A DNA stretch of 64,000 nt from Adineta vaga (Eukaryota; Animalia; Rotifera): assembly GCA_021613535.1 (NCBI GenBank), contig CP075497.1, forward strand, positions 3,162,001-3,226,000, given 5' to 3'. Below, piece by piece: positions 10,801 through 20,335 of this stretch; position 1 is the first letter of the stretch, and each line of letters starts with the position of its first letter. The translations under genes were made by a program, and so were the position numbers. The notes beneath the pieces are model-generated. The model was not told the DNA's origin. It made no database searches and worked only from the letters and a program-made list of their open reading frames with translations.

Positions 10801-13800
10801 ATGCCCTTTAGTTGGATATTGAGACGCAATCGAAACAGCAAGATAGAAGTGTGAATTTGAGACGAGACGACGATTTAAGGACAAATCAATAGATGAAAAA
10901 CGTTTGATCTCTTCTGGATGAATAAAATTCTTGTGGAGAGAGCAAGAGAAAAAAGTAAATGAATTAGAATCGACATTGACCACTCATCATCATCATCATC
11001 ATAAAAACTCTTTTTTTCTTGCTCGGTCAGAATATGTTATTCATTGATCTATCATAGTTAGTTCTAATACGCATGTGACAAACATACAACACATTGGCGT
11101 GAGGTGTTCTATGATGAGTAACTTTCTAAGTTAATTGTTTTTTTTCTCTATTTGAACGTACGTACGTTCAATACTCACATGCGTCTATATTGATATACAT
11201 ACATACATACATATATATATATCGATTGTAGATCAAAGGCAGTGTGATTGTCTCGAGTGTAACATACAATAGAATTAGAAGTAGTAGTCGTAGTATTATT
11301 ATTATTATTTTTCTTCTTATCATTCTGATGCAACAAAAGACGCAGTTGTTTAACTTGAACAGGTGATATGATCTCTAATGATTTCTTTTTCTCTGTCTCT
11401 CATTAGAAAGTCTGCGATGACATATACATACAAACATCTTATCAGTACGTGTTTTCGTCCATCATTTATCATCATCATATTATTTGAACACTCCTCCTTC
11501 TACTGTAGAGTGAGTATGAGACATATGAGCATGTGCGAGAAAAGAAGTTAGGCATGTTCTTGCTTGTCTGATAACGGTTATCATCTATCCCGAAGGGGGG
11601 AGAAAGAGAAGAAGAAGAGAGTAATATACTACTAGAAGTTGTTGGCTGTTGTAGTCTAGTCATGTTCATATTCTTGTCGTTTTTCGGTAAAAATAAAATT
11701 GATTTAGAAAGAAACTGAGATAAAATTTTGTTTTTATAAGATTTCTCTTTGTTTGTTTTTTATTAAAAATTGAAGAAGTATTCATCGATTAAAGAAAAGG
11801 AAATGCATACGGTATGATTTAATCAATTTAGACATTTTAAAGTGAGTTCTATGTATGATTATTGTTTGATTTTTTAGTATCTATCGGTTTAATTACCTTT
11901 TTTTTTATTATCGAATATCACGATTAAACATACATAGATGAAGCCTAGTTTGATTGTACAGTATGACAAATTGCAAGAAGCCTATTCTTCTGTATAAACC
12001 TGTTCAGTCATACATATTACACACATATACATGCATGTAAGCTATTCATTCATTGTTGTCAGTAACCCTTAATGGATTGTTTAAATTCATTATTTTATTT
12101 TCGCTTATATAATACTATTATTCGTTCTGTGCTTTATTTCGTACATACATATATGTAGACTTAGTGTTTTAATGAGACTACTACCAATTGTATTATTTTA
12201 TGTTACATTCGCAAACGCGCGCACGACACCATTGTATAGGAGAACGAGAAGAAAAAATAATACCAATAAGTTCCGTTCAAGTTATACAATATTCAATGCC
12301 TATTGTTATTCAGTAGCCAGCAGTTATGAGTTAAGAATATCAATCAATAATCGTTGCAATAGTTCTACCTGTCGTTCGATTTTGATAGGCAATCAAAGCA
12401 TACATGTTTGATTTCATGTGTCAGCAAGCAGAACTATTACGTCGATATCTTCTTCTTCTTCTTCTCGTTCTCTTTCTCTGTATATGCAAGCGTGCGTATT
12501 TATTTATGCACATTGTTCAGAATCAGTGAATATGTATATGCGATAAGTAAGAACCTTCAATAATTCAACTGTTGCAACATAAAATATGCATTGACCTCTT
12601 CTGTTGTTCTTGAAATCTTTCTCTTCCGCTTGATGCAACGAATTCTTTTCAAACTGACCGTTTATTCTTCTTTCTCTTTTTTGACTTCATTGAATATAAA
12701 AGAAAAGAATTGAAGTTACGATGTCCTTCTTTGGACAAACATTATCGATGATGAAAAAAAAACGAAACGATCTTTCAAAGAATCTATTGCATAAGTCATA
12801 TTCATTACGCTGAGTCATCATCCTTCACTTTTTACTGAGTTATTCGTCATCTCAAACAACTTACGTTTTTCTTCTCTCTCTCTCGCGCTCCTTTCTTCTG
12901 TGTCTCTTTTTGCAAACTTACTGGTTATTTTTTTCTTCTTTAATGTTTGCTTGCTCTTAAAGTAGATTTATATATTCGTCATTCTTTCTCGGTATATATA
13001 TATATATATATGGAGTCGAATCTTAAAGTGACAAGCCGACAAAAAACTTGACAAAGTAGGCTGTAGGTGTTTTAATACAAAGAAAAAACGAAAAAGAGAA
13101 GGAAGTCAGTTATACATCTTGTTTTTGTCATCTGTTGTCTAACATCCTCTTGTAATCTCTTATCAAAGTATAGCTATTAACTACGTAGTTGAATATCCAT
13201 GTTTAGAAAGGTATGTATTTCAATGATTTTTTTTTCTTTTATGTAAATTTCTTGTTTTTTTGATCATTCATATTGAATGACTCGCCCTCTCTGTTATGCT
13301 ACTGGTATTATGTTATAAATATATAAAGGTGTATTGATCGTTGTTTCTCGTCTAAATATATGCAAAGAATACATGTATATATATATATAGTAGACATATA
13401 CGTTGAACAACGATGAATACGAAATGAAGTGGTACTAGGAATAGGTTAGTGTCTGAACAATTTTGATTTAACACATCGATTTGTTTTGTTTTCTCTTTGT
13501 TGATTGTGTAATGAATATGTGAATAGAACTCGTCTCATATCCATCTTCTCGATTTGTATATTACCAAGTGGGTGCAACAAGAATTCATTTTTTTTTGTAT
13601 TCTTCATCTTCTTCGTTTTTTTTTCAATTTTGAAGAGCACGACGCGTCGAGAATAACAACATAATAACAACATCGGATCGATTGCATGATCGATCGAAAT
13701 AAAAGAAGATGAGAATATAAAAGTATTATTCAAAACGTGACCTGTTCAAAAAAAAGAAAGAAAGACATCATTGCATAAAGAAAAGATGATCAAATTTCGT

Positions 13801-14029
13801 TTAAATGATTTTTTCCAATTGGAATTTGTCTCGACGCATGTGTCCTTGTTCTATTTATCGATACTTTCTTTTCTTTTCATTCTCTCTCTCCCTGTATATA
13901 TATATACATATACATATATCCAGGCATCTCGCTATTGCCTGATTTTATGTCCTCCGAAAATATGTTTTTCTTCATTTCAGATGGCCATAAATGAATTTCT
14001 TTAAAATTGTTACCCACACGCACACAAAT

Positions 14030-17000
14030 ATGATCAATAAATCAATGAATTTCTCAATCTTTTCTTTAATTCTTATATTTATTCTCAGTTTTGATCAGAA
14101 TGTTACTGCATCAAGTAAGTTCAAAACAAATCGATTAATCATATATTTATATTGTCTTCTTTCGATTCACTAGTAACAAAACGAGGCAATGAAGTATTTC
14201 AATTACTAAAAGAAACACGAGACAGAGTAAAACATGGCACACGTATGTATCGATGATTCATTTAACGAACAAAAGAAAAGAAAATGAATGGAATTTAATT
14301 TTTAGAATGTCTTCCACCATCAAAATATTTTGCTGGCTCATGTTATACATATATGCGAATGTTACCAGCAACATCATGGGAACGAGCATATAATAATTGT
14401 TTGTCATTACCAATGACAAAAGATGCTCGACTATTAGTGATTGATTCTGTTGCTGAATATGAATTTGTTGAACGTGAACTTATTGGACCGAAATCAGGAT
14501 CTGATAGTGTGTCAGTTTATGTTGGATTACGTAAAATCAATGGTAGTAAAATCAATAAATTCGTTTTGTTTTGATTGATATATTTTTCTCGTTCATTTTA
14601 GATGCATGGATTTGGACAAACGATGTACCATTAAAAGAAACTCCAATATATCGATTTTGGGTAGATAATAATAAAGATATTCTTGCGTATGATTGTGGTG
14701 TTCTTTGGCTTGCTCGAAATAAAAGTGTATTGACAGCAGCCGCATGTGCTGAACAAGCTTTACGACCATATGTTTGTAAACATAGTAAGTGATCTATTTT
14801 TGTGACAGGCAAAAAACAAAATAACAGAACATAATCATTTGTTTTTCTAGCCATTGATCGTTGTTATAATAATAGTGGTGGTTGTGGAAAATATGGAACA
14901 TGTATAAATTTACCACTGATCAATTCCTATAAATGTCAATGTCGATTTCTCTATAATGGAATTCGATGCGAAAAATGTAAGTGATTTAGTTCATTGAATA
15001 TTGTGAAGAAGAATTACAATATCTAAAAAATATAATTTAGGGAGTAGTCAAGGTTTACAAGCAATCATTGGTGGTATTATCATTGTAGTGGCATTAATTG
15101 CTTCCTATATCATTAATTTGGATCGATCAGGTGATCAGTGGTCTTTTCGAAAATCAACAGCTGAACATTATCAAGCGTAAGTTTTCGATTAAGTAACAAT
15201 GAACAAGTAATATAATAAAATTCCTTCTTATTCATTTGAATTTTAGTGCTTCATTTTACGGTCAAAGTCGTCCAACCTCATATATGCCCCGGTCACCGAA
15301 TGCGATTGATCGCGTCATATTCAATCCATGTTTACCTTCTCATGGTGAATTTTTTAATGCTTCAACTCCGAATGAAAAACGTTATCGACGTACTTCTTCT
15401 TCCTCAACTCCTCCACCAATTCCTCCACCTATTGGTCGTTCAATTGAACGTAAACATCGCTATTCATTTCGCCGTAGTGTACAAGAACTTCAAGTTACAT
15501 CTCATCTACGTAATTTAGTCATTAAACCAAAACGTTTAATCTTTATTGTTTTACCAATTGTTTTAACAATTATTATTTCGGTGATTATCATTCATGCAAG
15601 ATCATATATCAAAGAAAATATTATAAATGCATCTTATACAAATTCAACAAGATTATTTCAATTTTGTGCCCTATATGATAATAATTATTATGTAAATTTA
15701 GTTACATTACCAATTGCTGTTGCTATTATTCTATTAATTATAGTTAATGAAACACGTTCAAATTGTTGTCGATCAAATAAAGAAAAAAATGCTGAGAACT
15801 TTTCTATTTATACACCCATACCATATAATCCATTTTCGAAAGTCGGTCGTCTTGATACAATGATGCTATGTGGTATTGTTAGTCATGAAATTCTTCAAAT
15901 AATCGAAGAAATTTTTCTTAAAGCAACACAAATGAAATTGTTAACAATGCGTGGACCATTATTTGATCTTATTCGACAAATTGGTCTTGTAATTATCATT
16001 GGTTTACGTTATTATCCCATATATACCGTTGTTGAAATGGTTAATGCAAATATTCTCTATTATGCATTATGTGCATTGTATATGTGGATTGATTTAATAC
16101 TTCGAATTATTGAACAATCGTATTGTGTAAATATTGGACCATTGATAAAGACTTGGCATCGATTTCAACAATTTAAAAATGAAGTTTCAGCAAAATTGGC
16201 GACAAATTCATTGATGACAACAACGATGCTAATGAATTTCGATCATGATGAATCACGACCAGAAGGATGGAAAGGACATATTCAAAAAATAAGAGATCGA
16301 TTACCGCATCGAAAATTTCGAACATCATCAACAACAATATTTCCAGCCATTCAAGTAATTCATTCGTTGACATAGTTTCGATTTTCTTTTTATTCTAATT
16401 CGTTTTTCCTTTTATAGTCATTATCAATGAATACACATCCTACTCAATCATTAAATTGGTCATCAATCTATTTAAATTTTTCATCTATCACAGATCGTAA
16501 TGAATCTCAATCAACATTCGAACAATTTAATATCGATTCATCAATTATCGGTGTCTTGAAATATACGCCATATTATTTATGTTTAACATATATTTGTATT
16601 CGTTTAACTTATTTATTTTTCTCAAAACTTTACTATTTACTTCGTCATTGTAATCAAGATCCAACTAATTCTCAAAAACATTCATTAAAACATATCTATC
16701 ATGAACCAGATATCAATTCATTTTCTTCCTCATCTCAAAAATTATCCGTAGAATATCGTTATGTTCGTCATTTATTTCAAAAAACTCAACGTATATTAAT
16801 TGAAACAAATGAAAAACTTTCATTCATTAAATCTACACTTTATAAAATCTATCGTCCAAATAAATATTTTCATTATTCAAAACAAATTTTAAATATGTAT
16901 ATCATTGCATTTATGTTAACTTATTATTTAACATTTAATATTCTTCAAGCTGGTTTTTATATCATCGAAAAACTTTATAGTATATTCGCTATACCATTAA

Positions 17001-18219
17001 TTGTCTTGTCCGATGAACTTGATCTACCCCAACCTCAACCATTCAATTTAAAATATGAAATTATGATTGCTTGTTTTCTAACCGCTTTTATTTATTATAT
17101 GCAATTATTATGGGGAATGAAGAATTATCAAAAACATATGCTCGATAGTTATAAAGGTAAAATTGATTTGAATAGAAAAGAATTTTAAATTATGATTGAT
17201 GTGTTTTCTTTTTTAAGGAATTTTTATTGATATTCCACCGAGAACAGCATTTAAAAGTATACGATTGATATCAAAACATGCACATTATCCAGGCTATTGT
17301 CTTGCGTATCTTGGTTTTGCTTATATATCCATGGGAAATGTCATATTCGTAACAATTGTTGTCTTACGTGTGACTTTCAAACATCTCTATTTTGTTGAAC
17401 AAATTGTTAAAGTTCTCATACCAATATTGGTGATTTATTTATCTAAATTTATCTTAATGTGGTTTCTATCTCGAACATTTTTCATTCAAAAGTAAGTTAT
17501 TTTTGTATTAATAAATATTAGAATTGTAATTTTAAAATGAAAATTTCAGACATGGAAAAACGATGGCATTGAAAAATCTTCGTGCATTCTTTGTCTTTTC
17601 ATATTTCAATTTCTTCTTCGATTGTTTTCTTGGTTTTGTTTCGTGCAGTCTTCGTGTAACAAAAGCATCCATCGCTGCAATTATCTTTCTTCCACGATTA
17701 GATTATTGTATATTTGGACGGACATTAGAAAAACTTGATTCAGGTTTTATTTCATACGTTTCATTTATTCATATGGAATGTCTTCATACACATCCTGTAT
17801 TAATTTATTATTGTTCAATAGTCAATGAAAAAATTCTTCGACGTGAACAATATTATCAATCAATTAAACGTGAACTTCGTCATTCAGAAATGTATGCATA
17901 TAGACGTCGTCAACGTGCTATGTTTCGTTGGGCATTAGCTTATACATTAATACGAAATATTCAATTAGTACAATTGAGAAAATATCAAATCAATCATTTA
18001 CAATTACCATCAGCTGAAAGTTTTAATGAATTTTTAGAACGAAAATTTTTCAATCGTTTTCAATTACCAATAACAAAATTTTCCTTCACAAAAAGTCAAA
18101 CAAATTTACATTCTAATGGAACAATGAATTCGAATACAATTATTCGAAATCAAGCAACTGCCTGTACAACTCTATTATTAGATGGAGATGAACATGATGA
18201 TAGAAAACCATCATTTTAA
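14030..18219 (+). CDS. Signal peptide + C-type lectin-like domain + EGF + 2 TM fused to a STRA6/STRA6-like (RBP receptor family) multipass membrane protein; 10 exons, 1208 aa
   Basis: Exons 14030-14114, 14174-14242, 14306-14542, 14602-14784, 14851-14976, 15041-15176, 15247-16354, 16418-17156, 17218-17491 and 17550-18219 all splice GT-AG in frame (3627 nt). CTLD: CLPPSKYFAGSCY..SWERAYNNC..VYVGL..WIW..DCGVL..C..PYVC. EGF: CYNNSGGCGKYGTCINL..YKCQC..YNGIRCE. STRA6 C-terminus: PRLDYCIFGRTLEKLDSGF..HTHPVL..RWALAYTLIRN..LRK. Confidence 0.88.
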
Positions 18220-20335
18220 AACGGAATTCTTCCATGAATAAATCAGTCTTTCAATGAAAATAGACAAGAATTTGCTCAAAATGAACAGTTCCATCTAAGA
18301 AATAAAAACAGAAAAGTGTGTTTTGTTTTCATCTATTGCTTTTGATAGACAGTATTATCATGATAATTATTTCTACAAAACAGCTTGTGTGTTTTGTAGC
18401 ATTGTTGTTGTTTTTTTTTCATCATTTCTAGTTCGTTGTTTCTCCTTTGTATATAAAAACTTCTTTTTTCTTTTTTTCAGAACATTTTCCAAATCATTGT
18501 GTGAGAATGTCTATGTGTGAATTTTTTTTTCAATGTAGTCTATTTTTTGACAAAGAACAGATTTCAATAAAATACTTTGATATATTTGTAATATATCAGA
18601 TGTGATCTAAACATGAAATAATCTTTCTTGCTTGTCAGATGATTATTTATTCAATGATTTCAAAAATGATTCTTCATATGTCATTAATGATTCAATGAAA
18701 ATATGTATGCTTAATATTAGATGAATTTATTCGAAGAAAAAAGAGCCTATTTATGTATTCAATACCTGGAAGATATTATTTGTGCCAAACCTCTTGATAA
18801 TCAAGTATATTTTCTACTTGTAAAAATGAAAATGAAAAATTCGATTTGACAGACGGTTTCTTTCTTCTTTTTTTTTCATTTGTCGTTGCCAGATTCTTCG
18901 ACTTTGTTCGTTCTATCAAAGCCACAGTAAGCCCCTCGAATGCAAATAATACTATCGAATGAATAGGCGGAATTAATGATTTGAAAAAACGTAAGAAAAT
19001 TACCATAATCAAGTTGTTTTTCTTCGGTTCAATCATTTTTTATGACTCAAAACTTTTAATCTTTCTAGTTGAATTGATTTCATTCAGACAGAGAAGGATC
19101 AATTTTCTATGTTGTTGTTATTCAATATCTAACTATATTTCGTCTGTAATAAACATTGTTTTCACTTCGATTTAACCACGGCATCTGATATCTGACTGTG
19201 ATAAACCATTTCGACAGAGAGCAAAAAAGAATCTGTACTAAAACCACCTATTCTTACTGGTTATATTCAGAATGGTGAAGCTATTAAAAAATACTTCAAT
19301 CTATAAATGAAAGAAGAAAAAAAATGAAAGAAAAAGTAAAAGAATGGAAGAACTATTGGTTCAAGTATTCTTCGACAAACGACTGAAGCTTCCCTTCACT
19401 CAATATGGCTTCGAAAAACGAAATCGAATAAAAGAACGCAAGAATCGAAACAGCAGTTTGATATTTTAATATCCCTGGTCGAACAAAAAAAAACAACACG
19501 TAAGATACCATCAGTTGAATATACAATAAAAAAAGAAAGAAAACTACTGAAATAACAAGACAAAGGTTGCAAACATTAGTGACAATGGGGCATTTTTTTC
19601 GTATTAAAATAGAAACTAAGTGGATGTGTATGTAGATGTAAGTGGATGTAACTTTTGTTTCTCTTGTAGAAAAAAATTCAAAACGAAGAACAATTCGCAT
19701 CACTAATTATTTGACGTTTTAACTTCAACAAAAACACGACCGCTTATGGAAAGAATGGTTTTCATCAGATAGAAAATTAATGGTTTGTATCAGTAAATAT
19801 GTTACATTATCTTTTAGAAAATGAAAGTTATTTTAATGTCTTTTAGTATGAGTTGAGTGTCTGTATTCGTTTATTTTTTGTTTTATTGGACAAACGCTTC
19901 TTCTTGATATCTGCCTAAGATGAAAACAAGATATGGTTCTTCCATCGAAATGTCAGTTGGAAGGGACACAAAAAAATATTTAGCTTTAGATAAAATAGAC
20001 GAATACAAATAGAGATTCCGTAAGACCTTGATACAGACGATATTCTATTTCTTCGAAGGGGTCTCACAGAAGGAGAAGAATCAAAGAGAAAGAAACCGAG
20101 GGTATAGACTCATTCTCGAAGCAATTACAAGTGTGAAATGGATTAGACAGCCATCGAATAGCCTTCTACAGTTCGAGCGTACATAGACAGATACAGAACC
20201 GTATCGTCGTGGTATGTATATATTGTTGTTTGTTCTTTTTTTCTATTCATATATAACTATTACTAGACTCATTTCCTTCAAATAAGACTGTCTAACAATA
20301 TATACATATAGATATATATTTTACAATGTTTCCTC

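Follow-up and report, generated by a model that had tools for sequence, protein, structure and literature searches.

The window analysed here, a whole stretch of 64,000 nucleotides from the rotifer Adineta vaga (C6:3162001-3226000; GenBank contig CP075497.1 of assembly GCA_021613535.1), carries at 14030-18219 on the plus strand a gene in which a C-type lectin-like domain (CTLD) and an EGF-like domain are joined to a receptor body of the STRA6 family. The lectin-EGF half and the STRA6 half are one expressed gene with one spliced mRNA. The anatomy of the predicted protein can be given with near certainty: a signal peptide, a spacer, the CTLD, the EGF-like domain, a transmembrane (TM) helix termed TM-A, a disordered linker, a second helix termed TM-B, and a full STRA6 body with its nine-TM region and tail helix. 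An ohnologue on contig C3 retains the same design, which recurs in other members of the Syndermata.

Exons were joined by a local script on the window sequence, and the joined protein was assembled for the frame check, hydropathy analysis, local hidden Markov model (HMM), dN/dS estimates and tree; the genome searched was that of A. vaga (100.8 Mb, six contigs). RNA evidence consisted of assembled contigs of public A. vaga runs over 13300-18900, namely X1 and X2 (study P1), X5 (study P2) and X6. The labels of these runs permit only a guess at their RNA nature, which was taken instead from the absence of introns. The gene and its transcript have the following parts.

13976-18306, plus strand: transcribed span with approximate mRNA ends (in X1 record 1, the 208 nucleotides ahead of 14306 equal exons 1 and 2, 154 nucleotides, plus 54 nucleotides; contigs of X1 and X2 stop at 18306)
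13991-13993, plus strand: alternative in-frame ATG, 13 codons 5′ of the ATG at 14030 (open reading frame 13991-14173; inside an RNA contig)
14030-14114, plus strand: exon 1, start codon and putative signal peptide (residues 1-26, 14030-14107; hydrophobic residues 9-22; junction 14114/14174 in RNA contigs)
14174-14242, plus strand: exon 2, charged spacer preceding the CTLD (71% identity with the ohnologue; junctions in RNA contigs)
14306-14542, plus strand: exon 3, part of the CTLD (exon model)
14602-14784, plus strand: exon 4, part of the CTLD (exon model)
14851-14976, plus strand: exon 5, EGF-like domain (Pfam, profile and cysteine pattern)
15041-15176, plus strand: exon 6, TM-A and juxtamembrane motif (hydropathy; the same 136 nucleotides in the ohnologue)
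15177-15246, plus strand: joining intron 6, GTAAGT..TTTTAG, 70 nucleotides, phase 2 (spliced out in X1, X2 and X5)
15247-16354, plus strand: exon 7, linker, TM-B, loop and N-terminal half of STRA6 (exon model)
16418-17156, plus strand: exon 8, STRA6 body (exon model)
17218-17491, plus strand: exon 9, STRA6 body (exon model)
17550-18219, plus strand: exon 10, STRA6 body, tail and stop (exon model, Pfam RBP_receptor)
18237-18242, plus strand: AATAAA signal, about 65 nucleotides 5′ of the contig ends (sequence and RNA contig ends)

The ten exons join into 3627 nucleotides, or 1208 codons, in which the joined-exon frame check finds a sole stop at 18217-18219. All nine introns have GT..AG borders and are very short (58-70 nucleotides), in an AT-rich region (about 30% GC). 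The nine splice junctions are all confirmed by intron-less contigs from three runs (X1, X2 and X5) of two studies. Because these contigs lack all nine introns at the exact modelled GT..AG borders, they derive from spliced RNA. A retrocopy as their source is ruled out by the fact that exons 7 and 10 each match the genome with 100% identity at a single place; searches with these two exons found no second 100%-identical, intron-less copy. A preliminary description of this DNA, made from the letters of the sequence, had proposed ten GT-AG exons forming one 1208-residue open reading frame, with an ordinary 70-nucleotide phase-2 joining intron (15177-15246) and a stop-free join; the frame check, the exon model and the nine spliced junctions bear out this proposal.

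The junction that unites the two halves, 15176/15247, which the preliminary description had named as the one to be sought in RNA, is spanned in X1, X2 and X5, with a shorter side of 112-136 nucleotides. X1 record 1 (1244 nucleotides) starts in the 5′ untranslated region (UTR), about 54 nucleotides before 14030, covers the exons for the signal peptide, CTLD, EGF and TM-A, and reaches position 15600 within exon 7, and X2 record 5 equals 15041-15176 joined to 15247-15714. No contig start or loose end at 15247 was seen among the contigs over 13300-18900. Between the lectin-EGF half and the STRA6 half there is no stop and nothing but the 70-nucleotide intron; retention of intron 6 would bring in a TAA (15178-15180) that stops translation immediately after TM-A.

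The 5′ UTR comprises at least 54 nucleotides and the 3′ UTR about 87. Since the ATG at 13991 falls within the transcript (contig start at about 13976), a longer N-terminus is possible, and translation from this codon may yield a protein 13 residues longer (1221 residues); with T at -3, this codon has a weaker context than the ATG at 14030, which has A there. Further upstream, at 13747-13765, contigs of X1 and X6 stop at 13747 with unlike sequence before it, which looks like the exon border of the upstream neighbour, about 230 nucleotides from the transcript start.

Some contigs in the region have another source. At 16426, 17596-17637 and 17923-17958, contigs of X1 and X6 show short conserved matches followed by unlike sequence and look like transcripts of paralogues; other family members would therefore be expressed too. 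An apparent joint in X6 (17637 to 17923, GT..TG, with a diverged 285-nucleotide replacement of the same length) and short loose-ended pieces at 17923-17958 were considered as splicing of the lectin-STRA6 gene and rejected as contigs of paralogues.

The domains and topological segments of the protein are as follows.

14308-14783, plus strand: CTLD, residues 53-191, in exons 3 and 4 with intron 3 (14543-14601) within (profile A3, local HMM and cysteines)
14851-14976, plus strand: EGF-like domain, residues 194-233, in exon 5, with six cysteines at residues 196-231 (profile and cysteine pattern)
15058-15126, plus strand: TM-A, residues 240-262 (hydropathy peak 2.59 at residues 242-260)
15247-15526, plus strand: Pro/Ser/Arg-rich linker, residues about 263-372 including the end of exon 6 (predicted local distance difference test score, pLDDT, below 50 at residues 1-73 of the exon-7 model)
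15527-15598, plus strand: TM-B, residues 373-396 (hydropathy peak 3.38 at residues 376-394; helix at residues 94-131 of the exon-7 model)
15599-15685, plus strand: short loop, residues 397-425, with the sequons NAS and NST and the family-invariant C419, corresponding to the extracellular N-terminal segment of STRA6 (alignment A2)
15665-18024, plus strand: STRA6 body, residues about 419-1144, in the rest of exon 7 and exons 8-10 with introns 7-9 within (profiles against 5sy1_A, Pfam)
17890-17997, plus strand: C-terminal amphipathic helix, residues 1100-1135 (aligns with the zebrafish STRA6 tail helix, about 605-628)
18028-18219, plus strand: cytoplasmic tail and stop codon (acidic, leucine-rich end kept in the ohnologue)

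Profile comparisons show that the STRA6 body is complete, with N-terminal segment, TM1-9, intramembrane helix and tail, and collinear with residues 28-637 of zebrafish STRA6. Exon 10 matches Pfam RBP_receptor (PF14752) with an E-value of 1.1e-26 (94.1 bits against a cut-off of 25; profile positions 454-604), and full-length homologues cover profile positions 11-605. Exons 7, 8 and 9 taken singly give no Pfam match, and a phmmer search of PDB sequences with exon 7 returned nothing relevant. Once homologues are included, the exon-7 profile (A2) matches zebrafish STRA6 5sy1_A at 28-296 (4e-26); the exon 8-9 profile (A4) matches it at 227-477 (5.6e-21) and exon 10 at 478-637 (3.5e-13), the tail helix included. 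ESM Atlas look-ups returned only 'RBP_receptor' clusters. The complete STRA6-family body claimed in the preliminary description is thus recovered both by the Pfam family model and by collinearity with the zebrafish structure. Shared with vertebrate STRA6 (zebrafish 5SY1 and human) are the body itself, the N-terminal cysteine, TM1, the region of the RYYP-type motif, the C-terminal membrane part and the tail helix, whereas the window protein is extended at its N-terminus by about 420 residues, which comprise the signal peptide, CTLD, EGF, both added TM helices and the cytoplasmic linker, and its pairwise identity to the vertebrate protein is low.

In STRA6, the cytoplasmic C-terminal tail is the main calmodulin contact (PMC8595884). 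No single-exon calmodulin gene was found among the best EF-hand loci of the genome. The extreme C-terminus (18140-18216) is acidic and leucine-rich in both copies (TTLLLD.DE...RKP.F) and may be a sorting signal.

The two CTLD exons alone give no match in the single-exon Pfam search, and the assignment was made with profile A3, in which the CTLD exons and the EGF exon stand as separate rows together with the N-terminal parts of three homologues. This profile matches the solved CTLDs of DEC-205, PLA2R and the mannose receptor (per-domain E-values down to 1.9e-7) and E-, L- and P-selectin over lectin plus EGF (E-selectin 1g1t_A 7-155, E 9.4e-15). A local HMM of the ectodomain matches the syndermatan proteins P0023 (1.5e-17), P0005 (1e-12) and P0037 (6e-10); the homologous region of P0037, which also has RBP_receptor, is above the cut-off of Pfam Lectin_C (PF00059; 31.3 bits versus 22.6). 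The cysteines are those of the long-form CTLD (C53, C64, C83, C162, C179, C189), and six of six are kept in the ohnologue. On sequence grounds the domain is called C-type lectin-like, and it is at most a putative lectin. Exon 5 matches Pfam EGF_3 (7e-5) and EGF (4e-4), both just under the cut-offs, and positions 139-182 of profile A3 match Notch EGF domains (about 1e-8) and the selectin EGF.

Like the window protein, selectins are membrane proteins in which the N-terminal CTLD directly precedes a single EGF domain, and profile A3 spans both domains in 1g1t, 3cfw and 1g1q. Selectins differ in their sushi repeats, single-pass type I topology, calcium-dependent sialyl-Lewis-x site and EPN/WND ligands; the window protein has none of these, is polytopic and is not a selectin. 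No sushi domain was found in any exon by the single-exon Pfam search. Ectodomains with a CTLD on a polytopic membrane body are known from polycystin-1 and others, and CTLD-EGF type I proteins from CD93 and thrombomodulin. The concept is the same as in the window protein but the membrane domains are unrelated, and homology is claimed for the CTLD and EGF modules only.

TM-A and TM-B appear to be exactly two helices added outside the STRA6 fold. TM-B lies N-terminal to all sequence that aligns with zebrafish STRA6 and has no counterpart in the STRA6 proteins of about 650 residues from molluscs, a hemichordate and amphioxus. In alignment A2 the C419 column is invariant, and the Mytilus, Solemya, Saccoglossus and Branchiostoma proteins start just ahead of it; these shorter proteins often have N-x-S/T sequons near the N-terminal cysteine. 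The profile places C419 on zebrafish STRA6 residue 31, and the next hydropathy peak (residues 427-445) aligns with the first TM of the shorter proteins. In the AlphaFold model of exon 7 (pLDDT 67, moderate), the first 73 residues are disordered, the TM-B helix spans 94-131 and more helices follow from 147. When this model is superposed on 5sy1_B (root mean square deviation 3.4 over 128 residues), model residues 142-294 correspond to chain residues 35-172; a structural match beginning at residue 142 places TM-B outside the STRA6 fold, in agreement with the sequence mapping although not as proof. The linker is predicted to be disordered and cytoplasmic. Right behind TM-A (15058-15165 region), a juxtamembrane motif, DRSxDxWSFRK, is kept in the ohnologue, unlike the rest of the linker.

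STRA6 has nine TM helices and five extracellular segments, i.e., its N-terminus is outside (PMC8595884). The addition of exactly two helices therefore allows an extracellular ectodomain to precede an N-out STRA6 body. Given its signal peptide, an ectodomain rich in disulfides and two additional helices, the window protein probably has its CTLD-EGF part outside, its linker inside, loop 397-425 outside and its tail inside. The argument of the preliminary description that two TM helices keep STRA6 N-out stands, in that both map outside the STRA6 fold; the orientation itself is what we infer.

The nearest paralogue lies on the minus strand at C3:12073788-12077693 (locus L015, C3:12072800-12078800). 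Synteny, named as a check in the preliminary description, places it and the window gene in one collinear, inverted block (window 3100-46162 versus C3:12054760-12087554) with conserved exons around both copies. Since this block encloses both, the C6 and C3 segments are ohnologous, and the C3 copy is an ohnologue left by an ancient duplication of the genome. It is modelled with nine GT-AG exons, which form an intact open reading frame of 1116 residues; exons 2-6 have the same lengths as in the window gene, and the joining intron (49 nucleotides) has the same position and phase 2. The ohnologue lacks an intron matching window intron 8 (17157-17217), so that its exons 8 and 9 are fused (986 nucleotides), and the other intron positions are common to both genes. 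The two copies agree best in the CTLD (77% identity) and EGF (76%) and least in the linker, where identity falls to 34% and the alignment has 50 gap columns; dN/dS is 0.12-0.48 across every part (simple Nei-Gojobori estimates, with synonymous sites partly saturated). The retention of the open reading frame and the joining intron in the ohnologue, with the CTLD and EGF as its best-conserved parts, shows that the lectin-EGF-STRA6 arrangement is old and under selection, as the preliminary description had supposed in calling the fusion selected rather than accidental.

Searched with exon 10, the A. vaga genome yields at least 14 STRA6-like loci. Beyond the window gene and the ohnologue, twelve other loci were taken with their upstream DNA; an EGF-like exon lies 250-2060 nucleotides 5′ of the exon encoding TM-B and the STRA6 N-terminal half in 11 of them, and an iterated local profile recognises a CTLD in four (L016, L017, L018 and L020). 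Most other A. vaga STRA6-like genes thus share at least the EGF-TM-TM-STRA6 arrangement. The preliminary description had implied a singular fusion, an implication contradicted by these EGF exons and by the same design across Syndermata. Locus L023 (C4:13246000-13253500) consists of a last-exon piece only and is a partial tandem duplicate or pseudogene; this piece and that of L022 (C4:13262700-13270200), which has the full EGF-STRA6 set, are 16.7 kb apart and have an equal score (94.1 bits). A weak, fragmentary STRA6-like locus at C6:8783439-8785087, with open frames of 136 and 55 residues, may be a decaying copy.

A search with exon 10 against 1.84 billion representative sequences gave 576 family members, and the ectodomain was examined among the best 150. 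It is carried there by proteins of the following species.

Brachionus calyciflorus: P0023 (CAF0764307.1)
Pomphorhynchus laevis: P0005 (KAI0985120.1), P0037 (KAI0985416.1; Lectin_C plus RBP_receptor) and P0017
Adineta steineri: P0138 (CAF1214242.1)
Rotaria sordida: P0064 (CAF4013125.1)
Rotaria sp.: P0024
Adineta vaga: P0059 (UJR16802.1)

Brachionus plicatilis P0174 also has Lectin_C. In P0023, P0037, P0005, P0138, P0064 and P0059, a CTLD and/or EGF at about residues 35-300 is followed by hydrophobic helices and then RBP_receptor; these predicted proteins are paralogues or distant orthologues of the window gene. The search for relatives in other rotifers that the preliminary description had suggested has thus found the same design in Brachionus, Rotaria and A. 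steineri, and also in Pomphorhynchus. Word-index homology searches returned close Brachionus-type relatives or nothing, and allowed no survey of the architecture across phyla.

None of the five STRA6 proteins examined from molluscs and deuterostomes has the CTLD-EGF ectodomain. The invertebrate 'STRA6-like' proteins with a length of about 650 residues (Mytilus, Solemya, Saccoglossus and Branchiostoma; P0021, P0022, P0046 and P0119) belong to the same family, with the same body and the invariant cysteine, but have neither ectodomain nor extra TM helices. In a quick tree of 24 chosen rows, with other family members left out and several branches long, all Syndermata lie on one side of a branch with 100% support in the Shimodaira-Hasegawa-like approximate likelihood-ratio test (SH-aLRT), and the five mollusc and deuterostome sequences from these four genera lie on the other. 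On this tree a single change suffices for the ectodomain label, and the window gene groups with acanthocephalan P0005 (95% SH-aLRT). These relationships suggest that the fusion, and some of the diversification of the family, are older than the split between bdelloids, monogononts and acanthocephalans.

Several predicted relatives have unusual layouts. P0014, P0049 and P0026 of Neoechinorhynchus agilis belong to the same subfamily and are predicted with TM-B and without CTLD-EGF-TM-A, either as truncated models or through secondary loss. In P0018, P0035, P0056, P0073 and P0111 (1121-1291 residues; one from Brachionus, the rest from metagenomes), RBP_receptor occupies only the last 270 or so residues, preceded by about 850-1020 residues without a Pfam match. 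Pomphorhynchus P0017 (2335 residues) has several matched stretches and may represent merged tandem genes.

In the literature searched, no paper was found that links STRA6 to rotifers or to a fusion with a C-type lectin. A survey of rotifer lectins was limited to proteins without TM regions (PMC8878817), and the lectin-STRA6 family is missing from it because TM proteins were excluded by design. A 2016 review stated that STRA6 is absent from invertebrates (PMC5133064), which is outdated because named mollusc, hemichordate and amphioxus STRA6 proteins exist. The database names of the syndermatan relatives are only 'hypothetical', 'unnamed' or 'EGF-like domain-containing protein'. The preliminary description knew of no described protein of this kind, which holds in that no paper was found, but unnamed predictions of the same design are already in public databases. 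The N-terminal architecture of this STRA6-family member is clade-wide and was previously undescribed in the papers searched.

RBP4 is regarded as a vertebrate protein (PMC5133064), and the ligand must therefore differ from that of vertebrate STRA6. In the mechanism proposed here, vertebrate STRA6 relies on the soluble carrier RBP4 docking at its outer face, and syndermatan animals would lack this carrier, with every family member bearing its own tethered recognition module. The CTLD-EGF module would bind a protein or glycan ligand without using the classical calcium-sugar site. At the STRA6 cleft it would deliver or gate a lipophilic cargo, and regulation of the calmodulin type could act through the conserved tail helix. 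That the tethered ectodomain takes over the ligand-binding step of RBP4 docking, with cargo handled at the cleft and calmodulin-type control through the tail helix, is a tentative proposal that we rate as somewhat less likely than not. The same tentative standing applies to the suggestion in the preliminary description that ligand capture may be coupled to lipid or retinoid uptake or to Ca/calmodulin signalling. For the favoured explanation as a whole, i.e., anatomy, topology and mechanism together, confidence and doubt are about evenly balanced.

Several observations weigh against this explanation. Visual inspection of the alignments shows no EPN/QPD or WND calcium-sugar motif in the CTLD: the EPN position is a shortened, Pro-free stretch and the WND position reads L-T-A, which makes sugar binding doubtful. 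The selectin-like lectin-EGF recognition of the preliminary description is accordingly kept as a CTLD-EGF tandem that matches selectins, but weakened as regards lectin recognition. Seven paralogous loci have an EGF but no recognised CTLD. A structure search with the exon-7 model (VIA-align, 48,161 chains) ranked 5sy1_B first with a Z of 9.4, a middling value for a helical protein, and Foldseek gave no match for this model at E <= 0.001. The NAS and NST sequons of the loop are not kept in the ohnologue, so glycosylation is unusable as evidence on topology for this gene alone; of the details in the preliminary description, these sequons and the linker motif TPPPIPPP are present in the window gene but absent from the ohnologue. 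The junction evidence consists of contigs, not single reads, no single contig covers the whole mRNA, and such contigs leave minor isoforms and trans-splicing possible. Finally, it is we who infer the ligand, transport and calmodulin function of the window protein.

Alternatively, the protein might be a recognition or adhesion receptor in which the CTLD-EGF part detects a ligand on a surface or in the matrix (self or non-self, food, a mate or a pathogen) and the STRA6 body is a signalling scaffold, e.g., via calmodulin and the tail, without cargo; expansion of the family would then reflect diversified ligand specificity, as in innate-immune or chemosensory receptors. At least 13 family members occur in one genome, and their ectodomains are so divergent that the profile sees a CTLD in only six of 14 loci, with the C-terminal STRA6 part 35-63% identical. 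The conservation of the CTLD as the best-kept part of the ohnologue pair is what specific binding would lead one to expect, and signalling roles are also described for vertebrate STRA6 (PMC8595884). However, the whole STRA6 body, including the cleft-forming regions, is under purifying selection, which is more than a scaffold seems to need, and we regard a receptor of this kind as unlikely, if worth keeping in view.

A processed precursor is improbable. Here, the ectodomain and TM-A would be cleaved in the linker or shed, giving a type I lectin-EGF protein and a ten-TM STRA6-like protein, or the ectodomain would serve folding or trafficking only. The long, disordered, fast-evolving linker (34% identity, large indels) would suit such processing, and Neoechinorhynchus proteins of the subfamily are predicted with TM-B and without the ectodomain; but no conserved cleavage motif is present, these models may merely miss 5′ exons, and the linkage is kept in many paralogues and in three classes of Syndermata, which speaks for a role of the joined form. 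The idea of an artefact, in which a reading by eye combined an adjoining lectin-EGF type I gene with a STRA6-like gene or the two share only rare read-through transcripts, might draw on the guessed RNA nature of the runs and the piecemeal contigs already mentioned, but is hardly credible given the exact removal of nine introns, the 15176/15247 junction in three runs of two studies, the stop-free 70-nucleotide join, the same junction, phase and open frame in the ohnologue, and the independent prediction of the same architecture in other species.

Studies of STRA6 have dealt almost solely with its role in vertebrates as the receptor for vitamin A carried by RBP4. In the present case an entire clade of animals has enlarged the STRA6 family, to at least 13 loci in one genome, and provided it with a built-in extracellular recognition module by means of a topologically exact two-helix adaptor. 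This offers a concrete way to address what STRA6-type proteins do independently of a carrier, and a clean example of an ectodomain grafted onto an N-out polytopic protein. The family also adds membrane CTLD proteins to those of the rotifer lectin survey (PMC8878817). It is conceivable, although we rate it as rather doubtful, that Syndermata swapped the soluble-carrier logic for self-contained receptors, in which a diversified CTLD-EGF captures a ligand or carrier and passes a retinoid, a carotenoid derivative, a sterol or another lipid as lipophilic cargo to the STRA6 conduit. If this were true, it would point to an ancestral, RBP4-independent job of STRA6 and to a new class of lectin-domain-gated lipid transporters.

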